Shown in pieces: positions 38,873 to 59,720 of a stretch of 64,000 nucleotides of DNA. A model generated the notes under the pieces. It made no database searches. It was not told the origin of the DNA and saw nothing but the letters and a program-made list of their open reading frames with translations. Location of the stretch: the IMG/VR virus record IMGVR_UViG_3300034050_000451, positions 186,001-250,000 of that record; one strand, given 5' to 3'. The translations under genes and the position numbers were made by a program. How positions within the stretch are numbered: the first letter of the stretch is position 1; each line of letters opens with the position of its first letter.

Positions 38873-41383
38873 TTATACAAAATTATTTTTTACCGAAGTT
38901 ACATAAACATCAGTAGAATTGAATTTTGTAAGTGTTATAATATCAATACTACCAACCAAAGATGCGGTGTAGAATGAACCAAATGGTTGTCTTACGTTTG
39001 AACTAAATGATGCAGTAGATTGATTAGCAGTTGTAATTAATACCGTTGCAGTTTGACCGAATGATATATTACTAGCTGATATGTGTGTTATAGCATTTCC
39101 GTCTAAATTTATTTCAAATAAATTACCTATACTAAAATCTAAAGATGCCGTAAATCCATTTACTGATATGGCTGTTATTTCATTAATAACAGGGTTATTA
39201 AATGTAGATGTACCAGCAAAGGTAGCTGCTCCTTGAAAGTCACTAATACCAGTTACAGTTAAATCGGTAGTTTGAACTTCACCATTTACAGTTTGATTAC
39301 CATAGAATGTATTTGTAGAACCAGTCTTAGCAAATAAATTATATCCATCTACTTGTAATGATGATGATACCAAATTATTTGGTTTTGATGTTATACTATT
39401 CCACGTAGGTGCCGATGCGTTATTTGTTATAGTAATTGCGTTCTCTAAACTTTGAGATATTAAAATACCATCTCCAGGTGCGAATGTTGGTGTATTTTGA
39501 ATAAAATCATAATCAATTTGTGCAGATGCGGTTAATACTACATTTGATAAATTAACAATTCTACTTGCTAATGATGATGATGTTAACCCAAATCCACCAC
39601 TTGAACCCGTCCAATTATTTAATCCTGCTAAACTTCCGTTACTCACAAATCCTAAATTGGATATTTGTGTTGATGATGATACTATACCATTAGTTAATAA
39701 TGAACTACTAATCGATGATACTAATGATGAAAATTGAGTTAATGTAGGTGATAGTACCTCAATAATAACCCAAGGACTACTATATCCAGAGGAGCCAGAT
39801 GTAATAAAAACATTATTAGAACCAGTATAGAATACTGGTTTGTTATATATTAGTTGGTAATCTATTTGAGATGATGAACTAACCGAACCAGATGGTAATC
39901 CGAATGAACCAGATACTAATGTTAATCCATTTAGTACATTTTGAACTCTAGCATCAGTATAATATTTATAATTTACATTTTCAGCAACATAGGATGTATC
40001 AAATCCACCAGTGTTAGAATTTGTTAATGTAATTTGTGCGGATGATGATATAAACCCATTACCAATCAAAGATGATGTTGTTGCAAATCCTAAATTAGTT
40101 ATTTGAGTTGAACCACTAATAACTCCGCTTGGTAATCTATTAACTATGTATGTTGAATTAACATCTGTTGATGTAAGGAATCCAAATCCATTTAATTGTG
40201 CGGATGATGATACCAATCCATTTGGAAATTGAACAAAATCATTAAATGCTGAACCAACCCCAGTAAATGTTAATCTATTATTACCAAATGTAACATTTGA
40301 AATATAATCAGAACCACCACCAGCTCCAAACCTAGAATCTAACGATGCTGAAAATTGTGAAAATGTTATTGTTCTGGTTTTATCTACATATACCGATGAT
40401 AATAATAAATTAGAATCAATAGGGTCAGTAGCTATTATAGATTGTGATATTATATGGAAATTTGGCCCAGTTGCTAATGAACTTGTAGTTACAAATCCTA
40501 AACCAACTATTTGTTGAGAACCAGAAACAGTCCCCTGAGGAATTGTTGTACCACCAGATGCGCTTATAAACCCAAAATCACTTATTTGTTGTGATGATGA
40601 TATTAGACCAAATGAACTACTTAAAAAACCTAAATTAGTTATTTGTTGTGATGATGATACAATAGATGCTGCTTTTAATGATGAAGTATATGCTTCAATA
40701 CTATTAACCTCACCTCTAATAGAACCAGTAAATGAATTAATAGAACCAGTAGTTAAATTAATAGAACCAGTAGTTGAATTAATTGAATTAATAGATGAAT
40801 TTGCTGATGATGTGAATGAATTTAATGCAGATATATTCGTAGCTGTACCTGATATAGTAACAGTTATATCACCATTAGTGTTATCAGCAATTGTTGCGCC
40901 TGGAAATGTAATAGTATCAACACTACTAATAGGTATTCCTGAACCATTACCAACAGTTAATGAAGATGGTACAGTTACAGTCACATCACCACTACCAGCA
41001 TTGAAAACAGTTGCATTATTAAATGTAATTTTATCAACAGCAGTTACGTTTGTACTTCCATCAGAAACAATCAATGAAGTAGATGAACCAGATAATACAT
41101 TAAGTACGTTTAATCTATCAGTTACCCTAGCATCGGTATAATATTTATAAGATGCGTTCTCAGAGATATTAGCAGTTGTTAATCCACTAATGGTGGAGTT
41201 AACCGCTGATATTTGCGATGCTAATTCAGCATCCGTTGCTAAATCCGAACTAACGTATGCTTTTATAGATGATGCCTGTGCATATAACGTTGTCCCACCA
41301 TCCACAACTGGTATCTTAGTTGTACCAACTATGGAACCTGATACTAACTGACTTAAATCTGATATTTTTATACTTGCTGCCAT
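38873..41383 (-). CDS. Ser/Gly/Thr-rich tail-fibre-like structural protein
   Basis: KISDL N-terminus, repeated VSSSxQI and ENxxYKYYTDARV motifs; putative late motif 4 nt upstream. Confidence 0.7.
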   Translation of the reverse strand: MAASIKISDLSQLVSGSIVGTTKIPVVDGGTTLYAQASSIKAYVSSDLATDAELASQISAVNSTISGLTTANISENASYKYYTDARVTDRLNVLNVLSGSSTSLIVSDGSTNVTAVDKITFNNATVFNAGSGDVTVTVPSSLTVGNGSGIPISSVDTITFPGATIADNTNGDITVTISGTATNISALNSFTSSANSSINSINSTTGSINLTTGSINSFTGSIRGEVNSIEAYTSSLKAASIVSSSQQITNLGFLSSSFGLISSSQQISDFGFISASGGTTIPQGTVSGSQQIVGLGFVTTSSLATGPNFHIISQSIIATDPIDSNLLLSSVYVDKTRTITFSQFSASLDSRFGAGGGSDYISNVTFGNNRLTFTGVGSAFNDFVQFPNGLVSSSAQLNGFGFLTSTDVNSTYIVNRLPSGVISGSTQITNLGFATTSSLIGNGFISSSAQITLTNSNTGGFDTSYVAENVNYKYYTDARVQNVLNGLTLVSGSFGLPSGSVSSSSQIDYQLIYNKPVFYTGSNNVFITSGSSGYSSPWVIIEVLSPTLTQFSSLVSSISSSLLTNGIVSSSTQISNLGFVSNGSLAGLNNWTGSSGGFGLTSSSLASRIVNLSNVVLTASAQIDYDFIQNTPTFAPGDGILISQSLENAITITNNASAPTWNSITSKPNNLVSSSLQVDGYNLFAKTGSTNTFYGNQTVNGEVQTTDLTVTGISDFQGAATFAGTSTFNNPVINEITAISVNGFTASLDFSIGNLFEINLDGNAITHISASNISFGQTATVLITTANQSTASFSSNVRQPFGSFYTASLVGSIDIITLTKFNSTDVYVTSVKNNFV
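40717..40779. repeat. 3 x 21-bp tandem repeat (TGSINxx heptads)
   Basis: taatagaaccagta-N7 in three copies. Confidence 0.85.
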
Positions 41384-41410: not shown

Positions 41411-41677
41411 TTACTTTTTATTTTTAACTTTCTTTTCCGGAACCTTTATTGTTGTATCTCCATTGGATATTTTATCCAATATAGTTAATAATTCTTGCCT
41501 ACGAATAGCATCTTTCATTTGCTTTCTCCTTTTAGTAGTTGGTTTAGTAAATTCCTTCCTATCTCTCAACTCCAAAAGATGACCTGATTCAAATGTTTTG
41601 TTTTTGAATATCTTAAGAGCTTTATTTATATCACCATTTTTAACATAAACTGTAACCAAAGATTTTTCTTTACTCAT
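41411..41677 (-). CDS. rpsU: ribosomal protein bS21 (phage-encoded)
   Basis: VYVKNGDINKALKIFK...LELRDRKEFTKPTTKRR. Confidence 0.9.
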   Translation of the reverse strand: MSKEKSLVTVYVKNGDINKALKIFKNKTFESGHLLELRDRKEFTKPTTKRRKQMKDAIRRQELLTILDKISNGDTTIKVPEKKVKNKK

Positions 41678-41681
41678 TATA

Positions 41682-42536
41682 TCAATTAATATAATTAGTT
41701 AATTCAAAGTTTCCACTAGCCATACCATATACTGAAATATGTAGTGCCTTTCTTTGGGGTTTACCATTTCTCAATAATCCAACAGTAAATGAATTAGTCT
41801 TACCAATAGATGGTCTTGAACGAGAATACTTACCTCCCATTGCTATTTGTGTTTGCCAATCATTCTCATCAATTTCATACCCTTTTTTCATAGCGTATGC
41901 TTTAGCAGCTGATGCCGCATCGGTAAATGATTTGAAATAAGTTTCGTTTGATTCTGACATCAAATCAGTTAATTTTATCATCGTATTTTCGGTTTTTCTA
42001 TTTTGTGTTATTTTAGCAGATACAAACATTACAACTGCAATTATAAAAAATATAAAAAATGCGTACATTCCCAACTTAGCCCATAAAGAACCTTCAGCTG
42101 CTTGTGCACCATATACATCTTCCATTATTTTCATTACCTCAGGTTCTGCTAATCTTTGGATTTCAGAATAATACCATTGTGAAAATGATGCTGTTGCGTA
42201 TTGAGTCCAACTACCAGCAGTTAATACAGCTGATATAATTGCTCCCAATGCTGATTTACTTCCTACATTAACTGAAAATTTATTAATTGTACTTCGTAAA
42301 TCCTCATTCATTCCAGTTTGCTTTGAAAAAACCGATTGAGCTTTATTCATTGCTGCCTTTGTATCCGGTTTATCTTTACTAATTTTATCTAAGTTAAGAT
42401 GCTTTACCGCATTTCCAGCTTTCTTATCAGCTATCCTTATTGCTAAATTCCTAATCTTAGAAATAGCATCACCCAACCCCTCATTTAAGTTGGGTTGGGT
42501 GTTTTTATTTTCAGTTAACTGATTTAATTTTATCAT
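41682..42536 (-). CDS. putative head-internal protein, two fused modules
   Basis: MIKLNQLTE at the N-terminus, a second MIKLTDLMSE at 41981, and TM segments. Confidence 0.55.
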   Translation of the reverse strand: MIKLNQLTENKNTQPNLNEGLGDAISKIRNLAIRIADKKAGNAVKHLNLDKISKDKPDTKAAMNKAQSVFSKQTGMNEDLRSTINKFSVNVGSKSALGAIISAVLTAGSWTQYATASFSQWYYSEIQRLAEPEVMKIMEDVYGAQAAEGSLWAKLGMYAFFIFFIIAVVMFVSAKITQNRKTENTMIKLTDLMSESNETYFKSFTDAASAAKAYAMKKGYEIDENDWQTQIAMGGKYSRSRPSIGKTNSFTVGLLRNGKPQRKALHISVYGMASGNFELTNYIN

Positions 42537-43513
42537 TTCATTAAGTTCTTAAGTGAAGTTCTATTAACTTTACCTTCTTTAATTACTGATTGTATCTTAT
42601 CTGCTAATTTATGAAATCCGTTCATTCTTAATTCAAATGCAATTCCATCAATTGCGGTATCTCCACTCCATCCGGCTGCTTGTGATGCGGCTACCCCCAA
42701 ATCTTGTGCATCATCATCAGGTGAACTATATACTGAATCATATTTAGCTCTGATTACATCCATCTTTTCTCTGAACTTAGGGTCTGATGGGTTGGGGTAA
42801 TCTGGCTTCTCTGCTAATTCAGGTTTCCCTTCTAATGCTGCTACTAACTCTCTTGCTTCACTATGGAAGTTTGAATCAGTAAGTGCCGCAACTGCTGCTT
42901 GAGCCATTTTCTTTTGATACTCAGTTTTATCCATCTTATCAGATGAAATTCCCATCTTTTGAGCTATCTTTCTAACTTCTTTATTTACCGTTGGGTCACC
43001 TTTTCTTGGTGCTTTTGGTTCAGCTGCTTTTGGTTCATCACTATCAGGTGCAAATGGATTCCATAAACCTCTACTATCTACCTCTTTTTGAGTAGATGGT
43101 GCAACTTTAGCATCTTTTTGATGTGGATACTTTGTTGGGTTATATGGTTCTAATTCAGATGTATTTACATTACCATCTGCATCGGTTTTTGTTTCACCTC
43201 TTTCATCTGCCATTCTTACAATACCAACTGATTTAGTTCTCGTATTATAAACAACTTTATCAACAGCTAAACTAGCAGGAGTTGCTTTGGGTGTATCCGA
43301 TTTTGGTTCATCTTTAGATGGTGTATTAAAGATATTCACACCAGACTTAGCATCACCACCCTTTGATGTTTTTGCAGTTGGGTCCTCATGTGAACCAGCC
43401 TTAATAGCTTTATCATAAGAATCTTTTGATTTGAAGTGTACTAACTTTCCACTTTCCTTACTCTTAGCAGTGAAATCACTAGCCTCATTTATCAATTGTT
43501 TTAATTGTATCAT
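42533..43513 (-). CDS. putative head-internal protein
   Basis: MIQLKQLINE signal and a module shared with 21191-22048. Confidence 0.55.
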   Translation of the reverse strand: MIQLKQLINEASDFTAKSKESGKLVHFKSKDSYDKAIKAGSHEDPTAKTSKGGDAKSGVNIFNTPSKDEPKSDTPKATPASLAVDKVVYNTRTKSVGIVRMADERGETKTDADGNVNTSELEPYNPTKYPHQKDAKVAPSTQKEVDSRGLWNPFAPDSDEPKAAEPKAPRKGDPTVNKEVRKIAQKMGISSDKMDKTEYQKKMAQAAVAALTDSNFHSEARELVAALEGKPELAEKPDYPNPSDPKFREKMDVIRAKYDSVYSSPDDDAQDLGVAASQAAGWSGDTAIDGIAFELRMNGFHKLADKIQSVIKEGKVNRTSLKNLMK

Positions 43514-43528
43514 AATTATATTTTGTTA

Positions 43529-43804
43529 TTAAAATCCTATACTAACTCGTTTACCCAAATCTTCTTCAACCCAACGAACTTTTGCTGCTATTAATTTTTT
43601 CATAGTATCTACATCAAATCGATATGCACCATGATAATTTTGTAATTTTATAGCAACTACAAAACCATGTATACCATCCCAAATCATTTCGGCCTTTCCA
43701 CCGATTATTGATTCGAATGCTTTAATTTGCTTTTGTTGAATTGGAGTTAATTCACTTAATTCAACAACAGATGCTTCGTTTATTAATTTACTTAATCGTA
43801 TCAT
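43529..43804 (-). CDS. putative head-internal protein (start revised to 43804)
   Basis: MIRLSKLINE. Confidence 0.6.
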   Translation of the reverse strand: MIRLSKLINEASVVELSELTPIQQKQIKAFESIIGGKAEMIWDGIHGFVVAIKLQNYHGAYRFDVDTMKKLIAAKVRWVEEDLGKRVSIGF

Positions 43805-43805
43805 A

Positions 43806-44330
43806 TTATTTTGAAAATTTTGTATATTTGAAATTACTATCGGTAAATCTTCTATCCACCCCATGTTTCTTATAAAACATATTTAATGTACTCACCAAAT
43901 CTCTTACAAATGATGTATATCTTTCTTTAGATTCTGGTGTTACTACATTAACTATATCTCTTGGAATTAAATCAGTTGCCACATTTTGTATTGACATTTG
44001 AACTAACTCATCTATACTTTCAGTAACTCCACTTAGTTTTAAAAATTCAGTTGGATTATATTTTACATTTTCATAATCAAACTTTTTCATCATTTTAGCA
44101 GCTATCTCTTTTCTATTTTCGGTATCACTTACCATAGAAACAATTTCAGCTACACCAACTACCATTTCTCTATCATTATCAGGTTGAGTTACTACTTCTT
44201 CCTCTTCTCTGATTTGTTGTGGAGTTTTGAATGGTGGAATATCTTTAAATGTATAAACTTTTCCAAGCTCAACTTTCATACCCTTCCATTCTATTTCCGA
44301 TAATATGGTTTTTAATTTAGATGAGCTCAT
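43806..44330 (-). CDS. putative head-internal protein
   Basis: KLKTILSE N-terminus. Confidence 0.55.
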   Translation of the reverse strand: MSSSKLKTILSEIEWKGMKVELGKVYTFKDIPPFKTPQQIREEEEVVTQPDNDREMVVGVAEIVSMVSDTENRKEIAAKMMKKFDYENVKYNPTEFLKLSGVTESIDELVQMSIQNVATDLIPRDIVNVVTPESKERYTSFVRDLVSTLNMFYKKHGVDRRFTDSNFKYTKFSK

Positions 44331-45517
44331 TACTTTAATAATTTAAATGCCATTGATTGCATACCCATTAATCCAGTACTTACGAATTTATCTTTGTTTG
44401 ATTGTTGCTTAAGTGCATCATATACTTTAGTTATTGCTGATGCTGAGTACAAATCAACTCTTACTTTTTTACCACTCTTTGGGTCTACTAAAACTTTATT
44501 TGAACTAGTCTTAACTATATCCTTTAATTGGGTTATAATAGTTGGTTCGGTGTTTTCTGTTAACTTAGAACCACCACACCCACAACCACAACCACATCCG
44601 GCTCCTTCATTTACAGAACTACCACCAATCAATTCATTATATGAACTCATATCGATTGTACCCTTTTCCTTTGTAAGCTTAATAGCTCTTTCAGCAAAAT
44701 CATGCAAATCCATATCAGTTTTAGCATCTTCTCTTGCAAATTCCAATGTTCTAATAAACAATGGTATATCCATAGTGATTGTATCAATTACATCACCTAC
44801 TTCAGTTAACCCTTGCTCTTTGTTTTTCATATCAGCGAATGCTTGAGCTTCAGGTTGTGTTTCAAATCCCTTTACTCTAATATCACCTTCCCATACAGCC
44901 CATTTTTCAATTGGGTCTTTACAAGGTTTTACAACGTATTTATCGGATGGGTCTCCGCTATGGTCTTCGTTATTTATTTTCTTACCAGCTTTAACTGCAT
45001 CTTTATGTGCATCAGAATTACCATGTGCAGGTTTCTCACCTCTCGCTCTTTTAGCTCGGATGTTTGCCCAAAGACCAGGTTTTTCTTCGTTTATTGATTC
45101 AAATTTCAATCCAAATCCAGTAGCCTCATCTCTTAACTCATCCCAATCACGACCACCATTACTTCTAATATAATCAACTGCACCTTTAAAATTAGAAAAT
45201 CCTAATTTCTTTAGTATTTTGTTATTACGATACAACGCTCTTAAAAAATCTCTAACACCAGCTGATGATAAAGAAATTTCATTAATCATTTCTTCAACAG
45301 TTTGAGGAAGTGCATCTGCCACTCTTTCCAATTCATCAGATTCAGTACCTTCACTAACTGATTTATAGGTATCTTCCAACCATTTCATCGCATCTCTATT
45401 TTTAGGGAAGTCTTTGAATTCTTTGTAAAATTCCTTAACGAATTCTTTAAATGATGATGCCTCTTTAGCCATCAAATCTACATCACTCATCGAACCCTCT
45501 TTTATTGATTTTTTCAT
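44330..45517 (-). CDS. multi-module (polyprotein-like) putative head protein
   Basis: Small modules separated by IKE, VSE, INE, LTE and VNE sites. Confidence 0.55.
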   Translation of the reverse strand: MKKSIKEGSMSDVDLMAKEASSFKEFVKEFYKEFKDFPKNRDAMKWLEDTYKSVSEGTESDELERVADALPQTVEEMINEISLSSAGVRDFLRALYRNNKILKKLGFSNFKGAVDYIRSNGGRDWDELRDEATGFGLKFESINEEKPGLWANIRAKRARGEKPAHGNSDAHKDAVKAGKKINNEDHSGDPSDKYVVKPCKDPIEKWAVWEGDIRVKGFETQPEAQAFADMKNKEQGLTEVGDVIDTITMDIPLFIRTLEFAREDAKTDMDLHDFAERAIKLTKEKGTIDMSSYNELIGGSSVNEGAGCGCGCGCGGSKLTENTEPTIITQLKDIVKTSSNKVLVDPKSGKKVRVDLYSASAITKVYDALKQQSNKDKFVSTGLMGMQSMAFKLLK

Positions 45518-45523: not shown

Positions 45524-45805
45524 CTATAATTTCTTTAATAAGCTGTACATATCTATTTTAAACCCATATCCAGCACCTTTATAATCAAAATCAATATCAA
45601 TTGGTAATTTTAATTTTGATTCCAAATAACTTTGTAATGCCTTTGGAATAACTAATGCTTCATTTGAATCAGATATTATATTTTGTAAAACATCCAAATC
45701 TTTTGAAGTTTTTGCAATACAAGCAATCCCACCATCTTTAATGTTGGGATGTACACCAAATTCAGCTGAATATGTATTACCTTTTAGTTTAAAGTTTAAT
45801 TTCAT
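45524..45805 (-). CDS. hypothetical protein (putative late)
   Basis: 93 aa; putative late motif at 45825. Confidence 0.7.
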   Translation of the reverse strand: MKLNFKLKGNTYSAEFGVHPNIKDGGIACIAKTSKDLDVLQNIISDSNEALVIPKALQSYLESKLKLPIDIDFDYKGAGYGFKIDMYSLLKKL

Positions 45806-47715: not shown

Positions 47716-48600
47716 TTAAGTGATACTTTTTTGTTTTAATCTTTCTACAAATGCCACCAATTCATCTCTACCAATTGCTTCTGCGTTTTTGTAAAATTCA
47801 GATTTTTTGTCAATAGTTTTAATTTTACCATCAAATGATGGAACTCTATTTATATAATCTTCTGTAATGTATAATCCATCTAAAACGTATTGATTCACTA
47901 CATAACCAGCTTCTAATGCTATTCTACCAGCTGTCATACCATAAGTATCTTCGGGTCCATAACCACCAAATGATTCAGGTATTCCAACAAACTGCCAAAA
48001 TGATTTAGAATATAGAGTATGCATACCACATCCAAATTTAATATATGGTAACTTCTTAAGTTGCATATTAGTTGGAGTTTGTGTAAATGCACCTAACATA
48101 GTTTCTTCACTAAATGCTTCGGCATTTTTCATTGAATCACTTACTAAACCATCCCAACTCATATCCCACCACTTTGGAATTGATGGTGAAAGTATATACA
48201 TACCCTCCAATCTTTCTGCTGCTTGTAATTGGTATATTAACTGATGTTCATGCATCACAATATCCGTATCACAAAATATAAATTGGTCAAAGTAATCAAT
48301 TTTAATAGATTCTCTCTTTTGTTGAGTTGTACCCCACATAGATTCATCTAATATAATTTGATTTATATTTTTCAATTCTTTATATTGAAACTGAGCATTG
48401 AAGATATTCATAAAGTAATCTTGCTTTAACTCACTATTTTCCCAATCCGTAAGTTTTGGGTTTAAATTCAAAGTTGCTTTTATAGTAACATCATATTCTC
48501 TACAATACGATAATGCTTTTCTATATTGTTCCATAAACCTTTGAAACATTTCTATTTCAGATGGCATTATATGGATACATACTAATGTCTTTTTTTTCAT
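47716..48600 (-). CDS. GT-A fold glycosyltransferase
   Basis: IFCDTD and FGGYGPED motifs. Confidence 0.7.
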   Translation of the reverse strand: MKKKTLVCIHIMPSEIEMFQRFMEQYRKALSYCREYDVTIKATLNLNPKLTDWENSELKQDYFMNIFNAQFQYKELKNINQIILDESMWGTTQQKRESIKIDYFDQFIFCDTDIVMHEHQLIYQLQAAERLEGMYILSPSIPKWWDMSWDGLVSDSMKNAEAFSEETMLGAFTQTPTNMQLKKLPYIKFGCGMHTLYSKSFWQFVGIPESFGGYGPEDTYGMTAGRIALEAGYVVNQYVLDGLYITEDYINRVPSFDGKIKTIDKKSEFYKNAEAIGRDELVAFVERLKQKSIT

Positions 48601-49838
48601 TAAAATACGTTTTTAAAGTGAGGTTTAATCATGTCAATTGTATTTAAAGATAAAATACTTATTTCAAATATATCCCAATTGAATGTACCCAATTGCCCAG
48701 TTTGTTCAATAATAAATGGTAATTTTTTAATAAATTCAGTAAAATGTTGATTAGTTAATTTACTAGCATCAAATTTAATGTGTACATTATTTTTAACATC
48801 ATTACCAATTGAATGAACTTTATCGGATATTATATATTCCGATTTAGAATCTTCATTCATAATATATGAGTTAAATTCACAATCTACATAGATATCATCA
48901 CACCAGGGTTCTAATATTGAAAGTAGTTGTGGTCTACAATTTTCAATTATAAATGATGTTGAATATCTTTTAGGAACTATTGGCATCATATTATCATCAT
49001 GTAAAACATCAGTATGCCACTTTCTCCACCACTCTCTAAATTTGGTTGCTCTTAGTTGTAAATATTCTTCAGAGTCTTTTGGTTTGAACCATATTGTACC
49101 ATCTGGTAGTGGTATCTCTTTTTCTATTTCGATACCATCTTTAAATCTACTACCTCTACAAGTCATATGATATACAAATGCATCTCTACTCTGAATTAAT
49201 TGGTACCCATTCAAATGGAACCTATTAAATATATCAGAATCTTCCAACTCCATAGGTGCAAATAATTTATCATGCCCACCAATAGATACAAAATCTTCTT
49301 TATATAACATCCAAGGTGCAAAGATACCATTAGTAACTTTACCCTCATTTAGATACTCAGCTTCATATACAAATTTTAAGAAATTGGATTTGGCATCAGT
49401 AAACTCATCCACATCCATTCCAAAATTCTTAACATATTTTTCAGGACCAGGTGGATGCAATGGTGGTTCGATTCTAGTGGCTGAAACTACACTCATTGGT
49501 TTAAGGTGTTTCAACATATTCCCAACATAGTTTGGTGTTACAATCATATCTGAATGTAATATTGTTACGATTGGTGTTCTAGCTAATTGAATACCTATAT
49601 CGTATAAAACAGTATGCCCAACTCTATCTTTTCCACCATTTCTATAAGTTAAAATATGATTCTTATCCGAACCATATTTTTCAATCCATTCCCAACTATC
49701 ATCAGTTGATGCATCATCCATTATCACAATATCATGCCCATCACCATAATGTTCTTCAATTGATGAAACGGCTTGTTGTAAAAATCTTAAATTATTCCTA
49801 CAAGGTATAATAAAGGTAACTCTTTGATAATTTGTCAT
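48600..49838 (-). CDS. GT2 glycosyltransferase
   Basis: FIIPCRN, DDASTD, HSDM, EDSD and FVYH motifs. Confidence 0.9.
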   Translation of the reverse strand: MTNYQRVTFIIPCRNNLRFLQQAVSSIEEHYGDGHDIVIMDDASTDDSWEWIEKYGSDKNHILTYRNGGKDRVGHTVLYDIGIQLARTPIVTILHSDMIVTPNYVGNMLKHLKPMSVVSATRIEPPLHPPGPEKYVKNFGMDVDEFTDAKSNFLKFVYEAEYLNEGKVTNGIFAPWMLYKEDFVSIGGHDKLFAPMELEDSDIFNRFHLNGYQLIQSRDAFVYHMTCRGSRFKDGIEIEKEIPLPDGTIWFKPKDSEEYLQLRATKFREWWRKWHTDVLHDDNMMPIVPKRYSTSFIIENCRPQLLSILEPWCDDIYVDCEFNSYIMNEDSKSEYIISDKVHSIGNDVKNNVHIKFDASKLTNQHFTEFIKKLPFIIEQTGQLGTFNWDIFEISILSLNTIDMIKPHFKNVF

Positions 49839-49848
49839 TATTATTTTT

Positions 49849-50676
49849 TTATTTATCTATATATCCAGCATTATCCGAATGTACTATTAATTTTATATTA
49901 TCATACTTTTTATGGTTTACACCATTTACAGACCAATACGATTGAAATTCATTACTAACAATATCCTTTTGTTCTTGTGTTAATCTAAAATCCTCAACTG
50001 CTGAAATTTCGGATTTAAATGGTAATTCAATATGTTTGATTTTAAAATTTTTAAAACAAACTAACCATATTATATAAACCAAATAATCAAATGCATAATA
50101 TTCTGATTGTAATGTATTTAAATTTTCAGATGATTTATACCAATCATAGAAATCTATAAACAATTCTTTTTTATAAACAGGTATTTCACTAAACCACCAA
50201 TATAGAGAATAATTTTTAGTTTGATTTATTAATATTTCATTAGTATCCAATCCCATATATCCTGCTGCTAACTTTATTATATTACCTCCAATTTCAGATT
50301 CGTTAGCCTTTACATAATCATATGATGCAATATTTTCATATATGGTATCTAAGTTACAATTTTTAACAAATTCAGATTCACAATCATATACACCAACATA
50401 ATCATAATCGTTAATTATAGATTGTAATGCAAACATTTTTTTAACATTAACAATACTTTTTTTATCTCTCAATGATTCATCCAATATTAATGGTTTATAA
50501 TTATCCATATATTTGTATTCGGATTTCCAATTAAAATCAAACATTTCATTTTCATTTGTAAAAATAAAATATAAGTCATGTGGTTTCTCTACATATTTTA
50601 TATAGGATTCCAATAAATTAAATGCATGATGAAATTTAGGATTATGAGTTGTTATTATAGTAGCTGTTTTAATCAT
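49849..50676 (-). CDS. putative glycosyltransferase
   Basis: KK...YDYVGVYDCE pattern; cluster context. Confidence 0.55.
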   Translation of the reverse strand: MIKTATIITTHNPKFHHAFNLLESYIKYVEKPHDLYFIFTNENEMFDFNWKSEYKYMDNYKPLILDESLRDKKSIVNVKKMFALQSIINDYDYVGVYDCESEFVKNCNLDTIYENIASYDYVKANESEIGGNIIKLAAGYMGLDTNEILINQTKNYSLYWWFSEIPVYKKELFIDFYDWYKSSENLNTLQSEYYAFDYLVYIIWLVCFKNFKIKHIELPFKSEISAVEDFRLTQEQKDIVSNEFQSYWSVNGVNHKKYDNIKLIVHSDNAGYIDK

Positions 50677-52036
50677 TTTTATAATTTTCTAAATAATATT
50701 TTAAATCCTCAGGGGTTCCCAATCCCCACATTTTAGGTACATCGAATGTTCTAACCTTTAATCCAGCTTTAATTGCGTTGTTATAAACAGGACAAACATA
50801 GAATTCTCCATTCACTCTAATATCTTGCTCAATCATCTCTTCAGCGTATTTCACAAAATCCGAACCATGTTTCCAATAATAAAAACCAATTGTTGCCAAA
50901 TCAGATATTGGGTTTTTCTCTTGTACTTCGGTTACAAATCCATCATCATCTAACTTAGCAAAACTCCATTTTGGGTGAGTTGCTTTAAATGTTGGTATTC
51001 CACCATCACAATCGTTCTCATTCATTTTGTAAAAGAATTCGTTTGAATCCCATTCTACAAATTGGTCTGAATTTGCAAAGAAAAGTGGTGCCTCTGAATC
51101 AATAAATTCTTTAGCCAATAATGCCGTACAAGCAGCTCCTTCGGTTAATGTATCTACTTCTACTACTTTACAACCAGGTGTAATTAAATTTAGTAAGGTA
51201 TCTAAGTTATATTGCTCTCTATGTGCTTTCTGAACTACATATATGTAATTTGCATCTATGTTCAAATTTTCTACCACAACTTGAATCATTGGTTTACCCT
51301 CTACATCAATTAGTGGTTTTGGGAATGTATAACCAGCAGTTTGGAATCTACTTCCAGCACCAGCCATTGGAATTAATACATTCAACTTTTTATCTACCCA
51401 TTTAGGTGTTGTTTCTATTTTACCCATTTGTATTTCAGTTAATTTTTTAAATATGTTCGTATAGGTTACTTCTTGTGGATTTCTAACTCTCAAAATATGA
51501 GATTTGGAACGAGATGCCGCAAGTAACCCATAAGGTGAATCCTCTACAATTAGAGTTTCTTCTGGTAAACAACTCATCATTGAAATTGCTTTCCAATACA
51601 TCTCAGGGTGTGGTTTAGAATTCTTAACATCTTCATTTGAGATAATTAAATCCATAAACTCCATTATTCCCAATTTTGAAAGTACAGTCAAAACTGTCTT
51701 TCTGATTGAATTAGAACAAACTGCTAATTTGTATCCATCTTCAGAAAGTGCATTCATTACCGATTGTAGAGTTTGATTTGGTTTCAACTCTTTTAACATC
51801 TGTAATGTGTACTTTTGTTTTTTATCCCATACTTGTTTATGTAATTCAGTTGGTAATCCCTTTTGTTCACTCAACATATTCAACTTTTGGTTTGTTTTCA
51901 AACCATCATAAGTTGAAAGGTGTTCAGCCCAACTTATTTCATATTCAGGTCCTAATGCATTATTTAGTGCATCAAAGTGGATATTCTTAGCTTCTACTAA
52001 AACTCCATCTAAATCAAATACTATTAATTTTATCAT
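50669..52036 (-). CDS. HAD phosphatase fused to sugar-phosphate nucleotidyltransferase
   Basis: FDLDGVL, KPHPE and EDS; then IPMAGAGSRF, PKPLI and LGTPEDL. Confidence 0.9.
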   Translation of the reverse strand: MIKLIVFDLDGVLVEAKNIHFDALNNALGPEYEISWAEHLSTYDGLKTNQKLNMLSEQKGLPTELHKQVWDKKQKYTLQMLKELKPNQTLQSVMNALSEDGYKLAVCSNSIRKTVLTVLSKLGIMEFMDLIISNEDVKNSKPHPEMYWKAISMMSCLPEETLIVEDSPYGLLAASRSKSHILRVRNPQEVTYTNIFKKLTEIQMGKIETTPKWVDKKLNVLIPMAGAGSRFQTAGYTFPKPLIDVEGKPMIQVVVENLNIDANYIYVVQKAHREQYNLDTLLNLITPGCKVVEVDTLTEGAACTALLAKEFIDSEAPLFFANSDQFVEWDSNEFFYKMNENDCDGGIPTFKATHPKWSFAKLDDDGFVTEVQEKNPISDLATIGFYYWKHGSDFVKYAEEMIEQDIRVNGEFYVCPVYNNAIKAGLKVRTFDVPKMWGLGTPEDLKYYLENYKND

Positions 52037-52731
52037 ACTATTCCTCTTTCAAATGGCATTACACCATATTCATTAAACATTTTATCCAATTCTTTTTGGT
52101 ATTCACTCATATTCCATTTTCCTTTATTAATAGCAGTTGCTATATAAGGGAAAACAATACTATCATAGTGATACATACCTCTTTTTTTCTCACTACCAAC
52201 TCGTATCATAAAATCCCGACCATATGAAATAATAGCTTCTTCAAATTGCCAAATATTTAACGAACCAATAGTATTAACTAAATTTTGAAATATTTCCTTT
52301 TTAACTAGTGTTGGTTGGATTGAAAACTTTGCGTATTGATTGGTAACTAATGTACTATCTATGGTTGATGGAAGAAATGAATCACCTGCTAATATCATTT
52401 TAATACTCTCAACTACTCCACTTTTAACATAACCATAATACTTTTCTAATAATTCAAAATTAGGTGTATCGAATAATATCATATCCTCATGCAAAAACAT
52501 AATAACATCTTCCTCAATTTGTGGAAGTATTTGTCTCCAGCGCTCTGTATATGATTTTGAATCATCATATACCAATTGGATATAATCCGATGGTATTTGC
52601 GTATCTATTTGATTAACAGCCACATACACTTTATAACCATTGATATATTTTTTGAATTGTCCAAAAAACATTGGCCATACATCCTTCATATCGGTGTGAG
52701 TGTACACTACTATTGGTAATTCTATTCCCAT
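52033..52731 (-). CDS. putative glycosyltransferase
   Basis: FLHEDM, QPTL, WQFE and KGKW motifs. Confidence 0.6.
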   Translation of the reverse strand: MGIELPIVVYTHTDMKDVWPMFFGQFKKYINGYKVYVAVNQIDTQIPSDYIQLVYDDSKSYTERWRQILPQIEEDVIMFLHEDMILFDTPNFELLEKYYGYVKSGVVESIKMILAGDSFLPSTIDSTLVTNQYAKFSIQPTLVKKEIFQNLVNTIGSLNIWQFEEAIISYGRDFMIRVGSEKKRGMYHYDSIVFPYIATAINKGKWNMSEYQKELDKMFNEYGVMPFERGIV

Positions 52732-53447
52732 ATTGTTTGTAAATTTATTCTATTTTCCCAAAGTCCATTTTGTATCATCCACCATTTATAAAATGCTATG
52801 GAATTTGAAAGGTCACCAGGGTTTCCTTCTATCTGAGCTGCAAATGTGTGAAATGGACTTCTAAATTCCATTTGCTCCTCTAATGAATTATATAATGATG
52901 TAAATGGTTTCATAGTTTCCATTGTACCATAAAACCACATATCCGCTGGTCCCATTTTGAAATGATTCCAATCTGCCATATATATTTTATCAGATTCGAT
53001 TTCAGTTTGAAAATTAATACATTGAACTGGGTATGGGTTACCTCTACCTGGTCCAGATGTATCTCTATTTATTCTACCCAAATCAAAACGAGCTTTAATA
53101 ATGATATCATATTCTGAATTAGTTATATATGGTAACTTCATTGATTCAGTTACACTATAAAGATGGGATAATACACTTTGAGGTGAACGTGGTGTTCCAC
53201 TCAAATTATTTAAACCTCTACCATTTACCAATTCATTAAAATCTTTTGGGGCTTCAAATATGGCTGACGTTGGATTATATAACTTAGTGATTTCACTCTC
53301 TTTTTCAATATCCCAACTATGGATAAACACATCAGTATCAGTAATATCTAAAATGTGTTTTTTAATATGGTTGTATCCATCATAACCATTGGAACTACCA
53401 TCAGTTGTTGAATCAAATAAACCATGTAAACATAGTGCTATTTTCAT
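52722..53447 (-). CDS. putative glycosyltransferase (paralog of the C-terminal domain of 32860-34353)
   Basis: MKIALCLHG, VFIHSW and YDIIIKARFD motifs. Confidence 0.65.
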   Translation of the reverse strand: MKIALCLHGLFDSTTDGSSNGYDGYNHIKKHILDITDTDVFIHSWDIEKESEITKLYNPTSAIFEAPKDFNELVNGRGLNNLSGTPRSPQSVLSHLYSVTESMKLPYITNSEYDIIIKARFDLGRINRDTSGPGRGNPYPVQCINFQTEIESDKIYMADWNHFKMGPADMWFYGTMETMKPFTSLYNSLEEQMEFRSPFHTFAAQIEGNPGDLSNSIAFYKWWMIQNGLWENRINLQTIWE

Positions 53448-53448
53448 A

Positions 53449-54114
53449 CTATTTTCTTTTCCACATTTTTATAAAATGAGAACTAACACCATCACCAACA
53501 GAATATATTTCAGTATGAGTATTACCAATCCATCCAAATAATTTTGATTGATTTTCTTTACCAATAAAATTATGGAATTCTCCAGTTATGTAATTTACTT
53601 TTGATAAATCCTTTTGGTACAATACATCCACTTCAGCACCTTCTATATCAATTTTCAACAAACCAATAGTACCAACCATTTCTAAAATGGTTTCTAAACT
53701 AATAGTTTCAACCTCTTCATATTCATCACCCCTAAATCCATGTTTGTTATGTTCATTTACAAAACCTGTTATTGAAAAGTTTCCAGAATTAGTATCATCA
53801 TCATTGTTACCCATATATTTTTTTAACTTTACAATTTCACCATCTTTAGATGATACTGCTTTGTGTAAAATTTGATGAGAATGTCTACTTTTATATTGTT
53901 CAACATTATATGAGGCTGCATCAATTGCTAAGATATTATGAAAGCGATAATTCCATGCTTCACTAAAACCACCAACATTACATCCCATATCAACGAGTTT
54001 TTCCGATGCATCTATGTCAACTAAATGAATTGGATATTCATCCCTACATTCTTTTGTTATTTGATTAAACCAATTTGATGGTTGATTTTTACTAATTAAT
54101 TTTTCTACTTTCAT
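53449..54114 (-). CDS. FkbM-family methyltransferase
   Basis: VDMGCNVG, LLKIDIEGAE and EFH motifs. Confidence 0.85.
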   Translation of the reverse strand: MKVEKLISKNQPSNWFNQITKECRDEYPIHLVDIDASEKLVDMGCNVGGFSEAWNYRFHNILAIDAASYNVEQYKSRHSHQILHKAVSSKDGEIVKLKKYMGNNDDDTNSGNFSITGFVNEHNKHGFRGDEYEEVETISLETILEMVGTIGLLKIDIEGAEVDVLYQKDLSKVNYITGEFHNFIGKENQSKLFGWIGNTHTEIYSVGDGVSSHFIKMWKRK

Positions 54115-54740
54115 TATTCTATAACTTTATTGCTTTTGAAAACAGTAAATTCGGTTAAATCTCTATAACCATTATCTTCACCTAAATCACTCATATGTTC
54201 TGGATAGTTTTGAAACATAGCCAAACCTTGAGCTGCTTGTTGTGGAGTCATATACATATTCCAACCATGGAATGTAATATCATCCTCTTTGTAATATTTT
54301 TCACTTCTACCTTCATAACGAGCTTTTTTAAACCAATCAGCCGCATCAGCATTATCGGTTAGAATCATACCACCTTTCCAAATTGGAAGTAACTTTTTAA
54401 TGTGGAATGATAACCCCATATAAGTTCCGGGTATGTACATACCGCTTGTTAATCGTTTTGCGGCATCGTAGATAGGATATGGTTTGAATTGGTATAAACC
54501 CTTCCAATGGTTTGTTTCTGCTCTCTTATCGAAGATAACTGTACCACCAGCATGTATAATCGATTGAGGTACTGATAGATACGTTTTTGATGGGATTGTA
54601 ACTTCCTTCACCTCATTGTATTTACAAATAAGGAATAATGCGTTTGTACAACTATCAATTGAGATAGCGTAAGGAGCGCCGGTATAATTAGCGATTTCCT
54701 CTTCAAACATTCTTACAATTTTGTATGGATTGTGTAACAT
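54114..54740 (-). CDS. DegT/DnrJ/EryC1/StrS PLP aminotransferase (short form)
   Basis: FEEEIA, SCTNAL, DAA and SFHIKK..GGMILTD motifs. Confidence 0.85.
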   Translation of the reverse strand: MLHNPYKIVRMFEEEIANYTGAPYAISIDSCTNALFLICKYNEVKEVTIPSKTYLSVPQSIIHAGGTVIFDKRAETNHWKGLYQFKPYPIYDAAKRLTSGMYIPGTYMGLSFHIKKLLPIWKGGMILTDNADAADWFKKARYEGRSEKYYKEDDITFHGWNMYMTPQQAAQGLAMFQNYPEHMSDLGEDNGYRDLTEFTVFKSNKVIE

Positions 54741-54743
54741 AAT

Positions 54744-55169
54744 TTAATCTTTAGTTAATATATAATATTTTTTTGTAAATCCACAAGCTTCGAATAATTT
54801 CATACTTGCTTCATTATCTATTTTTACTTTTGCAAATGCGGTAGGCCATGTAACCATACATTGGTTTATCATAAACTTACCAACTCCCAAACCTTGAAAA
54901 TCAGGATGTGTACATACTCTGATATCATCTTCAATAACACCAACGTATCCAGCAGGTTTACCATTAACCAATGCTATACGATAAAACTGAGAATGTGTTT
55001 TCATATATGAATTCTGCATTTCTTCAGTAATATGAGTTGATTTGATAAATCCACTCAATACTCTTTTATCATTTCTAAGAACTCTTACAAATTCCCAATA
55101 TCCGCTTGTACATTCTACTAATTCCATATGCAAATCTTTTGAATATCTTGTGTGTTTTGGTAATTCCAA
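54744..55169 (-). CDS. GNAT N-acetyltransferase
   Basis: HPDFQGLGVG and NEASMKLFEACGF motifs. Confidence 0.85.
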   Translation of the reverse strand: MELPKHTRYSKDLHMELVECTSGYWEFVRVLRNDKRVLSGFIKSTHITEEMQNSYMKTHSQFYRIALVNGKPAGYVGVIEDDIRVCTHPDFQGLGVGKFMINQCMVTWPTAFAKVKIDNEASMKLFEACGFTKKYYILTKD

Positions 55170-55894
55170 AATGATTGTAAATACCCTCTATGAGTTGGCA
55201 TATCCATCATTGGTGTTAAACAAGTCCCAATATCAACATAAGTGTTATCAGGGTAATCTCTAAACAACTCCACAATTGCCAAATTGGTAAAAGTAGAAGC
55301 CGAAAAAAGGAATATGTGGTTTTTAACATTATTTGTTCTAATCCACTCTTTAATATTTTCAATTTTTCCATAATCATTAATCATTGCGTTATAACCCACT
55401 CTAAAGTCTTTCACAAAAAATGGTAATCTATTTAAGTTAGCATCCTCATGTCCAATAAACACACAATCTCTACTATAAAAAATTGGTAGAATATGTGTTA
55501 TGAATATAGGATAGTTTCCGTTTACCCAAAGATTAGCCCAAGTTAGTGATTCATCATCACCACCAGCTAAATCAACCTGCCAATCAAATGCTTCCTTACC
55601 TACACAACAACTACAACTAATTCCTTTGTAATAATTGTGTTGTTTGTATTGAAGTGATTCAACTAACTTCTGTTGATAAAATGAATGTTCTTTTGGGTCA
55701 AAGTGTTTGAAATCAGGTGACTGATAAACACCACCTTGCTTTTCATTTCCAATCTGAATTAGCCCATTATCTAATACTAATTCTTTATTTTGTAAGATAT
55801 ACATTTCACCATCTGAATAACGTGAAAATGCGAAGTTTTCTTTATTATCCAATTTGGATTTAAATTTAAAAAAGTGTTCTCTAAAATTTTTCAT
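55118..55894 (-). CDS. GT-D-fold-like glycosyltransferase
   Basis: FAFSRYSDGE and DIGT motifs. Confidence 0.6.
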   Translation of the reverse strand: MKNFREHFFKFKSKLDNKENFAFSRYSDGEMYILQNKELVLDNGLIQIGNEKQGGVYQSPDFKHFDPKEHSFYQQKLVESLQYKQHNYYKGISCSCCVGKEAFDWQVDLAGGDDESLTWANLWVNGNYPIFITHILPIFYSRDCVFIGHEDANLNRLPFFVKDFRVGYNAMINDYGKIENIKEWIRTNNVKNHIFLFSASTFTNLAIVELFRDYPDNTYVDIGTCLTPMMDMPTHRGYLQSFWNYQNTQDIQKICIWN

Positions 55895-56882
55895 CTCTTA
55901 ATATATTTAAAACTTTAATAGCAGTATCACCATCACCATATGGACAATTTTCACTAATATACGGATTATTATTAACTTTTCCAAATAATTTTTTTAAATC
56001 ATTTGGATTTTTACATAAATGTAAATGACCTGTATATAATCCTTCAGGTCTTTCGGTTGTAGTTCTACATACAATTACTTGCTTATTAAAAAATGAGCCC
56101 TCTTCTTGTAATCCACCACTATCCGAAATAATGAATCTACATTTCTTAATATGTAAAATCATATCAGTATGTTCCATTGGTTCAACCACATTAACACTGG
56201 TTAATAGATGTTTCCATTTTTGAACATTTGGATTTGGATGAATTGGTAAAATAAATTCCAAATCAGGATTAGCTATTGCTAAATCATTAAGTTCTGTAAA
56301 CCACTTATCCATCCAATAATGATTTTCTCTACGATGTAAAGTAATCAGTACAAAGTTTTCATAAGTTGGGTCACCAAAATCTACCAAATTATCCAATACA
56401 GAGTTTCCAACTACATGAATTTTACCATGTACTTTTTCTTTTATTAGATTATTAGCCGATAATTGAGTTGGTGCAAGATTCACATCTGCTATTCTTGCTA
56501 TCATTTGTCTATATCCCTCTTCAGGGTATGGGTGTTGTAAATCACCACTTCTTAACCCAGCTTCCAAATAGTAAATCTTTAACTGTCTATTGAATGCTGC
56601 TAATGCACAGCCAAATGCTGAACCAGTATCACCTTGAACTAATACTGAACTGAATTCCCCATTAGGGAATTGTAACATACAATCTGATATAATTGAATCC
56701 AATCTATTATCAGAATTGTTTATATTAATTTTATAATCTACTTTAACATTTTGAAGTAAATCAGGGTGTTGACCTGTAAATAGAAGTTTATATTCACTTC
56801 TATCCATAATCTTAATCAATGGTTTAATTTTTAACCATTCGGGTCTTGTCCCAAAACAGAGTAATATTGTATTATTTTTCAT
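55881..56882 (-). CDS. wecB: UDP-N-acetylglucosamine 2-epimerase
   Basis: FGTRPE, QGDT, EAGLRS, PEE, TLHRREN, DSGGLQEE and ERPE motifs. Confidence 0.93.
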   Translation of the reverse strand: MKNNTILLCFGTRPEWLKIKPLIKIMDRSEYKLLFTGQHPDLLQNVKVDYKININNSDNRLDSIISDCMLQFPNGEFSSVLVQGDTGSAFGCALAAFNRQLKIYYLEAGLRSGDLQHPYPEEGYRQMIARIADVNLAPTQLSANNLIKEKVHGKIHVVGNSVLDNLVDFGDPTYENFVLITLHRRENHYWMDKWFTELNDLAIANPDLEFILPIHPNPNVQKWKHLLTSVNVVEPMEHTDMILHIKKCRFIISDSGGLQEEGSFFNKQVIVCRTTTERPEGLYTGHLHLCKNPNDLKKLFGKVNNNPYISENCPYGDGDTAIKVLNILRDEKF

Positions 56883-57642
56883 TTACTAATTTCCAACCTT
56901 TAATTCTTTGTTCGTGAAAATATTGATTCATTAATTGTTTAAATGGTGTACCTTCTACACTAGCTTGGTTTGATTCCCATAGTGAGTTAGCATCACCACC
57001 ATATTCAGCTCCTTTGATACTCCCCCATAGGGATTTATCATCTTTAGGATGTGGCGGTACAAATGTAGGTATTCCTGCATACTTTTGTAACATATACGAA
57101 AAGTGCATATCTTCACCACAGGTATTGTATTTTGGGTCAGGTAATTCTCTCACCATATGAGATAACCATTCTTTCTTAAAGAACCAACTATGTCCAACTA
57201 AATCAACTTGTACAGTTCTTTCATTGTTACCTAATTCCGGCCATCCGAATCTTAAGTAGTGTTCGTAATAAGATGAATGTTCCGCTGGTAATGGGTTTGG
57301 ATAAAGTAATCCAACTGAACCCAATAAACCTTCATGTGTTTTCATAGTTTCCATACAATTTTCTAACCATCTTTCGCCAGGGATTGTATCATCATCAAAT
57401 ACACAAACATAAGGATTTCTAGCGTTCATTGCGAAGTAGAATCTTGCCCATACACCAAAGTTGTAATTACAATATGCAACTGGAATTTCCGTTCCAATAT
57501 CATAATTCAACAAATCGTTATCACCTGGATTATTATACCATAAAAGAATCTCATCCGGCTTTACCGTTTGATTCCTTAGAGCTTCTAATTGTTCGTTGAG
57601 GTTTTCGCCTCTCTTATAACCATTTAATATAACTGTTATCAT
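56872..57642 (-). CDS. GT-A fold glycosyltransferase
   Basis: VFDDD and GED motifs. Confidence 0.75.
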   Translation of the reverse strand: MITVILNGYKRGENLNEQLEALRNQTVKPDEILLWYNNPGDNDLLNYDIGTEIPVAYCNYNFGVWARFYFAMNARNPYVCVFDDDTIPGERWLENCMETMKTHEGLLGSVGLLYPNPLPAEHSSYYEHYLRFGWPELGNNERTVQVDLVGHSWFFKKEWLSHMVRELPDPKYNTCGEDMHFSYMLQKYAGIPTFVPPHPKDDKSLWGSIKGAEYGGDANSLWESNQASVEGTPFKQLMNQYFHEQRIKGWKLVNEK

Positions 57643-59242: not shown

Positions 59243-59720
59243 AATATTCTTCTAATACATTTTTCTTAAAAAATACTTCACTCATATATTGAATCCCATC
59301 TTTGTTATATGTACGATATGGATTTTCAATCTTTTTTAATTCAATACCAGTTTTAACGTAACTATTATAGATACGTTCTCCACCTCTATCATATACAGTT
59401 GCTATATCATATAATCCAACATTTGTAGTTTTTTGTTCATTTAAAACTTTATTAGCTTTATCTTCCAATTTCTTAAACCATTTGAAAAAATCTTCCGGTT
59501 TAATTGATGATAATTTAATTGCTGAGAACTTTTGTTCATATATTCCCGTTACGAATATAATAGTTGAATCGGCTCCACTTAGGGATTCCTTATTACCATC
59601 CGCATATTTGTAAGTAGATATACGATATACCCCATACGGCTGTACAGCCGAACGGGATACACGTTTTTCTTCTAATATTAGTGGTTTATACTTTATTGCC
59701 TGATTTGGAGTAGTTGCCAT
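59235..59720 (-). CDS. hypothetical protein, weakly reminiscent of T4 gp2 DNA end protector
   Basis: Y..Y...IFV.G...AIKL...YRTY pattern. Confidence 0.35.
   Translation of the reverse strand: MATTPNQAIKYKPLILEEKRVSRSAVQPYGVYRISTYKYADGNKESLSGADSTIIFVTGIYEQKFSAIKLSSIKPEDFFKWFKKLEDKANKVLNEQKTTNVGLYDIATVYDRGGERIYNSYVKTGIELKKIENPYRTYNKDGIQYMSEVFFKKNVLEEYYG

Follow-up and report, generated by a model that had tools for sequence, protein, structure and literature searches.

We describe here a gene that probably encodes a head-targeted polyprotein of a T4-type jumbo phage, that is, a chain of small modules whose joints would be cut by the phage Peptidase_S77 protease to release mini-proteins. The gene, an open reading frame (ORF) of 395 amino acids (aa) at 44330-45517 on the minus strand that we named P0001, lies in a window of 64,000 nucleotides (nt) taken from positions 186001-250000 of an IMG/VR virus record of 270,865 bp that is rated complete (IMGVR_UViG_3300034050_000451). 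P0001 is a mosaic whose joint is conserved both as protein and as DNA. The breakpoints between its relatives fall at the joints, the joints lie in predicted linkers, and the same genome carries a T4-type prohead protease gene.

A mosaic of small modules

P0001 is parted by eight joint Glu residues (7, 56, 80, 144, 184, 239, 304 and 321). Its parts are listed below, with a slash marking a joint, q numbers giving query residues, pLDDT standing for the predicted local distance difference test of an AlphaFold2 model, and pI for the isoelectric point.

44330..45517 (-): whole ORF P0001, leader plus A1, A2, B, C, D, E, Cys-Gly peptide and F
45497..45517 (-): leader MKKSIKE, 7 aa, ending I-K-E/G; pLDDT<50; first predicted cut
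45350..45496 (-): module A1, aa 8-56, helical, C-end KSVSE; matches q1-54 and q2-56
45278..45349 (-): module A2, aa 57-80, acidic, C-end EMINE; alignment ends cluster at aa 77-80
45086..45277 (-): module B, aa 81-144, helical, C-end FESINE; from homology blocks and structure model
45086..45100 (-): joint 15-mer GAATCAATAAACGAA (ESINE); identical at 14 of 15 positions to the family-wide joint GAATCAGTAAACGAA
44966..45085 (-): cassette C, aa 145-184, basic (pI 9.9), KPGLWANIRAKRARGEKP..KINNE, mostly disordered; 63 copies in 150 relatives
44801..44965 (-): module D, aa 185-239, three strands and a helix, pLDDT ~90, C-end QGLTE; from homology blocks and model
44606..44800 (-): module E, aa 240-304, helical, DTITMDIPLFIR..DMDLH.., C-end GSSVNE; from homology blocks and model
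44555..44605 (-): Cys-Gly peptide GAGCGCGCGCGGSKLTE, 17 aa (305-321), disordered, C-end KLTE; kept before module F in relatives
44333..44554 (-): module F, aa 322-395, helix, two strands and three helices, basic (pI 9.9); commonest module, 64 copies in 150 relatives

The module analysis is based on an exhaustive HMMER search of 1.84 billion representatives (E<=1e-3, no length limit), in which 2,295 representative clusters, all of them metagenomic, match P0001; module orders and joint motif were taken from the best 150 of these 2,295. Each relative matches one or a few blocks (q1-85, q58-147, q140-186, q183-240, q238-303 or q317-395), and the matched blocks sit anywhere in proteins of 67-1229 aa. 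Modules are found alone, duplicated or fused to others, in orders that include F, EC, A, AF, CC, FC, FA, DEA and BDA, and they are conserved at 50-85% identity across very different phages. Cassette C is often in tandem or right behind a 12-17-aa leader, and module E is also present in LR756501. Multi-module fragments were used for the MAFFT alignment, as alignments of single-module fragments misplaced D and E; single-linkage clustering of the segments put everything in one cluster.

The differences between relatives are located at the joints. Only one of the 150 (P0002) is colinear with P0001, and it carries one added 50-aa cassette, placed exactly after ESINE and closing with its own ESVNE. 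Identity to P0001 ends right after GSSVNE in P0162 and right after FES[IV]NE in P0003, P0163, P0170, P0007 and P0008, and P0164 lacks C and D through a deletion that runs from joint to joint. The P0001 leader aligns with ESVNE/G in relatives where module A is internal; the counterpart of A1 terminates in ESVNE or KSVNE, and relatives diverge past INE or ISE at the end of A2. The 1229-aa P0135 consists of nine segments parted by SVNE-type joints, and its units are separate genes in the P0001 genome (window 21191-22048; G000 76329-77465 and 78629-79732), with a 44-aa cassette C inserted exactly at the ESVNE of its G000 78629-79732 counterpart. Judging from these alignments, stand-alone genes and internal modules are interchangeable, and cassettes are exchanged, gained and lost at joints. 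An initial annotation, made from the letters of the window, had proposed such exchangeable cassettes and named full-length colinear homologues as the finding that would speak against them; this objection falls away, because the homologues are shuffled, with cassettes inserted or deleted exactly at joints.

The same DNA is present in at least 19 lake-water metagenome runs from 2020-2024. In the lake runs other, more abundant contigs match only 44964/5-45093/45100, at 85-90% nucleotide identity and with unrelated sequence beyond; this segment is cassette C, from the ESINE codons to just past E184, and the nucleotide homology of these foreign contigs begins exactly at the ESINE joint. When the lake-run sequences were matched, 44566-44608 was passed over as a repeat. 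No within-population cassette joints were seen in the sequences of four lake runs. Searches of GenBank phages by blastn and tblastn gave no cultured relative, the sole match being an uncultured 735-kb phage, and literature text and keyword searches (including 'ESVNE' and 'DUF5661') returned no earlier description of joint-delimited mini-module chains.

The initial annotation had read P0001 as small modules separated by [ILV]xE. All eight motifs are present, and seven of the eight sites conform (I5-K-E7, V54-S-E56, I78-N-E80, I142-N-E144, L237-T-E239, V302-N-E304 and L319-T-E321); the remaining one, I181-N-N-E184, does not fit, because its P3 residue is Asn. INNE is a cassette boundary and a non-canonical site, and a cut between C and D is doubtful. 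The further statement that the boundaries coincide with changes in sequence character proved right for all eight sites, each of which matches the end of a homology block. Among 239 relatives, 68% of the internal BLAST alignment starts and 72% of the ends are no more than about 6 residues away from one of the eight sites, compared with 22-23% for random sets of eight positions (P<=0.0005).

P0001 holds 10 [LIV]xE sites, seven of them at module joints. The narrower motif [LIVM][NT]E, picked after seeing the data, is enriched (5 sites, shuffle P=0.0004). Pure chance in an otherwise ordinary protein would agree with the count of [LIV]xE, which is marginal for P0001 alone (P=0.05), and is refuted by the boundary and joint statistics; we consider its probability negligible. 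The site pattern is real because the sites coincide with independent boundaries, the motif count alone being unremarkable.

An AlphaFold2 model of P0001 contains compact small units with no fixed mutual arrangement (predicted template modelling score 0.26). Its pLDDT<50 segments are 1-9, 64-72, 141-150, 160-188, 237-245 and 300-321, and these include six of the eight sites (E7, E144, E184, E239, E304 and E321); the non-junction [LIV]xE sites E29, E76 and E210 are within confident helices or strands. The proposed check of whether linkers fall at the E sites comes out positive in the model for these six; E80 is modelled in a weak helix. The model points to beads on a string, with the joints in disordered linkers.

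Database searches gave few clues to the modules. Pfam returned no family above cut-off for the whole of P0001 or for five pieces of it, PHROGs returned only weak families of unannotated function for P0001, and Foldseek found nothing similar to the whole model in PDB at E<=0.001. Atlas searches with the modules found viral hypothetical clusters only. Module F was found there in viral clusters only, one of them also with a Zeta_toxin domain, a co-occurrence that we take as a lead only, as we do the AP2-like fold of module D (template modelling score 0.47, Atlas search). The basic C and F units may bind DNA. The Cys-Gly peptide, with a weak metallothionein-like (Metallothio_2) match below cut-off, may be metal-binding or redox-active. 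Its Cys-Gly motif GAGCGCGCGCGGS stands between two joints, and the variants CGCGCNTCGG and CECGCDG occur ahead of module F in relatives.

The joint as protein motif and as DNA

The commonest 5-mer in the relatives is ESVNE, with 135 occurrences, and the joint logo reads (K/E)-E-S-V-N-E followed by A, G or S. In a motif-independent test, the sequence upstream of conserved module anchors was scanned for [LIVM]xE, which was found at a fixed distance from the anchor in 50/50 cases for C, 16/16 for A and 13/17 for D. For module F, 43 of 46 anchors have it 2-3 aa upstream and 45/46 have it at some nearby distance; for module E, 31 of 43 have it 7-9 aa upstream and 38/43 at some nearby distance. The P1 residue is Glu in all 33 cases for modules A and D, and never Asp; for module D, E stands at -1 before the DHSxDP anchor in 17/17.

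In the AT-rich clade Asn is strongly preferred at P2 (342 of 435 sites). This preference could be taken to favour cutting of the joints by a different protease, of the host or of the phage, or self-cleavage between Asn and Glu, and Pfam found no embedded protease domain in P0001. However, elsewhere the P2 Asn is swapped for Thr, Ala, Glu or Asp with P3 [VLIM] and P1 Glu staying in place, and this P3/P1 pattern is the specificity of gp21-type proteases; cutting by another agent is therefore, in our view, very improbable.

GC-richer huge phages (L038, L039 and L048) carry GVAE/G, PMAE/G, SMEE/G and TVDE/A around module E and an HD_4 enzyme module, with module E located between SMEE/G and TVDE/A. 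Because these phages keep [V/M]-x-E and the small residue after it with different DNA, the joint is more than a DNA signal.

The joint is fixed at the nucleotide level as well. After redundancy was removed by flanks, the 15-mer GAATCAGTAAACGAA was found at 16 of 23 ESVNE sites with unrelated 45-nt flanks on both sides, where codon usage predicts ~3%, and its Asn codon, AAC, is the minor Asn codon of the P0001 genome. The genome holds four in-frame copies of the joint 15-mer (<=2 mismatches), only in P0001 and the two genes flanking the protease gene. Since the 15-mer recurs at 16 of 23 sites with unrelated flanks, the 15-nt joint is probably a recombination joint too, and its fixation fits concerted evolution by recombination at the joint. 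This conservation as DNA goes beyond what the initial annotation saw. Shuffling at short conserved motifs (PeSLs) is known from T4-type phages (PMC2839356), and the joint would be its in-frame counterpart at the sub-gene level.

These features can also be read without any protease. P0001 could be an uncleaved multi-domain protein that works intact, with the motif serving as a flexible linker and as an in-frame DNA recombination joint. The nucleotide-fixed 15-mer at 16 of 23 independent sites, minor codon AAC included, is in line with such a protein, as are the breakpoints, cassette gains and losses located at the joint and the shuffling of T4-type phages at PeSLs. What an uncleaved protein leaves unexplained is that [V/M/L]-x-E and a small residue are kept with other joint DNA (GVAE/G, PMAE/G, TVDE/A), that P1 is always Glu and never Asp, that N-terminal leaders close with the same motif, that stand-alone genes and internal modules are interchangeable, and that the exact joint is found in the genes beside the protease gene. 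We consider this explanation unlikely, while regarding it as the foremost competitor of the cleaved polyprotein.

Head protease, leaders and genomic setting

The head gene set of the P0001 genome is T4-type, with a Gp23-family major capsid protein (E 3e-76), a T4 portal, a T4-type large terminase (Terminase_6N) and a Peptidase_S77 (gp21-type, PF03420) prohead protease gene at G000 78016-78603 (E 2.8e-26). The genes flanking the protease gene (G000 76329-77465 and 78629-79732) carry ESVNE and share modules with the P0001 network, and the S77 protease itself has LIIE and LVNE towards the N-terminal end and MNE towards the C-terminal end. The capsid-protein maturation site of the clade is predicted as L-x-E followed by A or S, ~21-24 residues before a conserved VRR. 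Among 15 large module-bearing records S77 was found in 12, with Gp23 in all 12, and in large records the module genes are often 10-20 kb or less from the head block.

The gp21 protease of T4 cleaves behind L/I-x-E, and for prohead loading a capsid targeting sequence (CTS) of 10 residues is enough, with CTS residues 4 and 7 mattering for targeting and 8 and 10 for processing (PMC9026906; PMC3012670); Asp at CTS position 10 (P1) blocks processing (PMC9026906). By analogy, P0001 would begin with a short capsid-targeting-like leader. An [LIVM]xE ending at residue 7-14 is present in 61% of relatives versus 18% of the phage's own proteome, and recurrent leaders in relatives are MKKSELIKIVSE, MEDLKKIQE, MAKLTDIMNE and MKK[STV]I[KR]E. 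The start of P0001 at M1 is backed by MKK[STV]I[KR]E/G, kept in relatives; some gene callers choose M10, which gives 386 aa. An SD-like (Shine-Dalgarno-like) AGAGGG ahead of M10 was not accepted as a start signal, given that SD sequences are not in use in this genome. Neighbouring genes open with 10-aa leaders that are hydrophobic at positions 4, 7 and 8 and have Glu at 10, as in the T4 CTS; examples of 10-aa leaders in the genome are MIQLKQLINE/AS, MIRLSKLINE/AS and MIKLMDLLNE/E.

We propose that the P0001 precursor enters the prohead core, as T4 internal proteins do via the capsid targeting sequence, and that the phage Peptidase_S77 then cuts after the joint Glu residues. Such cuts would yield the leader (1-7), A1 (8-56), A2 (57-80), B (81-144), C (145-184), D (185-239), E (240-304), the Cys-Gly peptide (305-321) and F (322-395). 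The products would be eight units of 17-74 aa (~1.5-8 kDa); they would remain with the DNA, and their delivery into the host is probable. The same 15-nt joint would offer a short in-frame homology for insertion, deletion and swapping of cassettes between genes and phages. Targeting, cleavage, retention and ejection of the products, as well as the roles of the modules, are here inferred. The initial annotation had named the prohead protease as the releasing enzyme, an idea with which the S77 gene, the joint logo, ESVNE beside the protease gene and the joints in linkers are all consistent.

Several points weigh against a cleaved, head-targeted polyprotein. Nucleotide fixation could alone explain conservation of the joint as a recombination site, with no protease needed. 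The C/D joint INNE lies outside L/I/V-x-E; the [LIV]xE count on its own is 10 against 5.9 in shuffles, which places P0001 at rank 92 among 319 proteins, and the motif is frequent genome-wide (1.6 per 100 aa). The AlphaFold2 model was run on a shallow alignment (32 rows) and places E80 in a weak helix. The P0001 leader has 7 residues and is not a 10-aa T4-like CTS, unlike the leaders of its neighbours, and the gene lies ~150 kb from the protease gene and head module, surrounded by genes without assigned function. The association with S77 (12 of 15 records) comes without a baseline frequency, and G007 (354 kb, rated complete) gave no S77 match. A predicted complex of the protease with the linker at aa 122-166 scored 0.00, a result that we list here, yet which weighs neither way.

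The setting of the family also raises the question of whether P0001 is a prohead core or filler protein, cut into peptides that leave the head and have no later role, as are T4 gp22, gp67 and gp68. In T4, the core proteins are processed at numerous L/I-x-E sites and for the most part leave the head, ESVNE-bearing paralogues of P0001 are located between the portal and scaffold genes, and the scaffold and its neighbours are the proteins of this genome richest in [LIV]xE. P0001 shares the many L/I-x-E sites with a gp22/gp67/gp68-like core but not the location in the head block, its gene lying outside the head module. Moreover, the modules are compact, conserved at the level given above, kept as stand-alone genes and combined with enzyme modules (HD_4, and Zeta_toxin in one cluster), and these properties point to module-specific functions. 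A core protein is therefore a rather improbable explanation, and a polyprotein with working products is the reading that we retain.

Going further, lake and sea T4-type phages might run a combinatorial cassette system in which the 15-nt joint is both recombination site and head-protease cut site, a speculation that we put below even chances. Under this tentative scheme, effector cassettes of 40-90 aa could hop between genes and phages. It is likewise conceivable, and no more strongly held, that one leader loads a changing set of injected mini-effectors: basic DNA-binding peptides, an HD-type alarmone hydrolase and a Zeta-like kinase.

The genes on both sides of P0001 belong to the same context:

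45524..45805 (-): upstream gene, 93 aa; stand-alone copy of the C-terminal segment of P0059 (43% identity, E 2e-13)
43806-44330 (-): downstream gene, leader MSSSKLKTILSE; same module network
43529-43804 from M21 (-): downstream gene, leader MIRLSKLINE/AS; same module network
42533-43513 (-): downstream gene, leader MIQLKQLINE/AS; same module network
41682-42536 (-): downstream gene, leader MIKLNQLTE/N and internal MIKLTDLMSE/S; same module network

The four downstream genes (41682-44330) have 9-12-aa T4-CTS-like leaders and modules common to P0124, P0132, P0089, P0022 and P0135. The longest ORF at 43529-43864 (-) overlaps the gene upstream of it by 59 nt, and M21 is its likely start, which gives a leader near-identical to that of 42533-43513. 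The gene at 41682-42536 (-) encodes 284 aa, with a leader, a hydrophobic membrane-like stretch and a second Met-leader, MIKLTDLMSE/S, at aa 186; P0132, P0089 and P0022 end with the module that stands behind this internal leader. The gene resembles a head-to-tail fusion of two leader-bearing genes, suggesting a route by which internal joints could arise from leaders.

Other leader- or module-bearing genes were noted. A 135-aa gene between portal and terminase (G000 82934-83341) encodes by itself the Cys-rich module (..ARYWSCRKW) that forms the C-terminus of many chains (P0069, P0016, P0076, P0014 and P0015). At G000 86407-90879 (L080:13508-17980) we found a 1490-aa protein with the CTS-like leader MSDLSKFLVE/SILLGE and with cytidylyltransferase-like and GNAT domains; its relatives have similar leaders (MGNDLTNWVIDSILSE), and it is a candidate for a packaged enzyme analogous to T4 Alt. 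In 240-354-kb phages (L039:8288-10639, plus strand; L038; L048), a chain of 784-846 aa with the leader MSDMRKLLE/S combines HD_4 with module E. Its RelA/SpoT-type HD_4 domain (E 3e-15) lies between PMAE/G and VQE/N joints, and the chain is a candidate capsid-delivered alarmone hydrolase.

The genome as a whole has near-all genes on one strand and a G+C content of ~32%. A Shine-Dalgarno sequence is found upstream of just 39 of 319 genes and the upstream regions are A-rich, indicating a genome without SD use; the phage also carries a ribosomal protein S21 gene (41411-41677, minus strand, Pfam E 1.6e-13), which adjoins the cluster of leader-bearing genes. Together these two features fit a host that starts translation without SD sequences, possibly one of the Bacteroidota. 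A 201-nt contig identical to the P0001 3' end and the start of the next gene (44315-44515) was found in lake metatranscriptome run X20, where DNA carry-over is possible. The window further contains a phage GroEL homologue (8614-10215, minus strand, PHROG E 5e-168), a long run of glycosyltransferase-like genes (47716-62424, minus strand), and an 836-aa Ser/Thr/Gly-rich repetitive protein (38873-41383, minus strand) with recurring SSSQQI..LGF units and no family match, which may be a fibre.

Comparison with known systems

If the joints are cut, T4 capsid targeting is broadened from a single cargo behind the leader to many, and this would account for the way in which large uncultured phages package, and keep renewing, their stock of very small injected proteins. 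Thousands of candidate ejected mini-proteins, with anti-defence or host-takeover roles, could then be defined by sequence alone, their boundaries being read off the joints. Joint and leader would also provide a linker and leader of natural origin, portable and cleavable by the protease, with which several proteins could be loaded into T4-type capsids. A 15-nt element that is at once cleavage site and recombination joint would be an unusual motif, selected at two levels, and the combinatorial cassette system, if true, would be a phage counterpart of integron cassettes joined with a polyprotein.

Among systems that cut in trans, T4 gp22, gp67 and gp68 and the inner-body and ejection proteins of phiKZ, 201phi2-1 and SPN3US resemble the proposed processing of P0001 in having a trans-acting head protease, multi-site cuts after Glu and a three-residue motif. 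Their extra cuts destroy propeptides and scaffolds, whereas the segments between the sites of P0001 are conserved, folded and exchangeable modules. Polyvalent proteins carry unrelated domains on one polypeptide, probably delivered together with the DNA and with a proposed proteolytic release, and were likened by their authors to viral polyproteins (PMC5512222); those of Iyer et al. 2017 have two to 15 unrelated domains, and the P0001 family resembles them in concept, in its several unrelated domains and in its mosaic architectures. However, polyvalent proteins have a Zn-peptidase (MPTase) of their own and large enzymatic domains, and P0001 has mini-domains and sites that match the head protease; no peptidase or LPD domain was found in P0001 or four partner proteins. 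PeSL cassettes (PMC2839356) and tail-fibre adhesin motifs of T4-type phages likewise use short conserved DNA motifs as crossover points, but PeSLs are intergenic promoter-terminator units that move whole genes, in contrast to the 15-nt coding joint, which moves sub-gene cassettes in frame. Strict eukaryotic RNA virus polyproteins carry their own protease inside and yield replication or structural proteins, whereas the P0001 protease is a separate gene, so that the likeness is an analogy only.

The eukaryotic-virus-like strategy put forward in the initial annotation is therefore better replaced by the T4 internal-protein and capsid-targeting system, combined with multi-site gp21 processing, as nearest analogue. 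The likeness to IPI, IPII, IPIII and Alt with their CTS and gp21 lies in the T4-type head genes including the S77 protease, in the short N-terminal leader ending [I/L]-x-E, and in diverse, fast-evolving, non-essential-looking cargo behind a conserved leader. No sequence homology to IPI, IPII, IPIII or Alt was found in Pfam, PHROGs or GenBank phages. P0001 differs in that it chains many cargo units in one ORF with internal copies of the site between them, in that its units are very small and shuffled across thousands of proteins, and in its 7-aa leader. By its sequence, the P0001 chain is a member of none of the families compared, and is best viewed as a probable variation on the T4 internal-protein and capsid-targeting theme.

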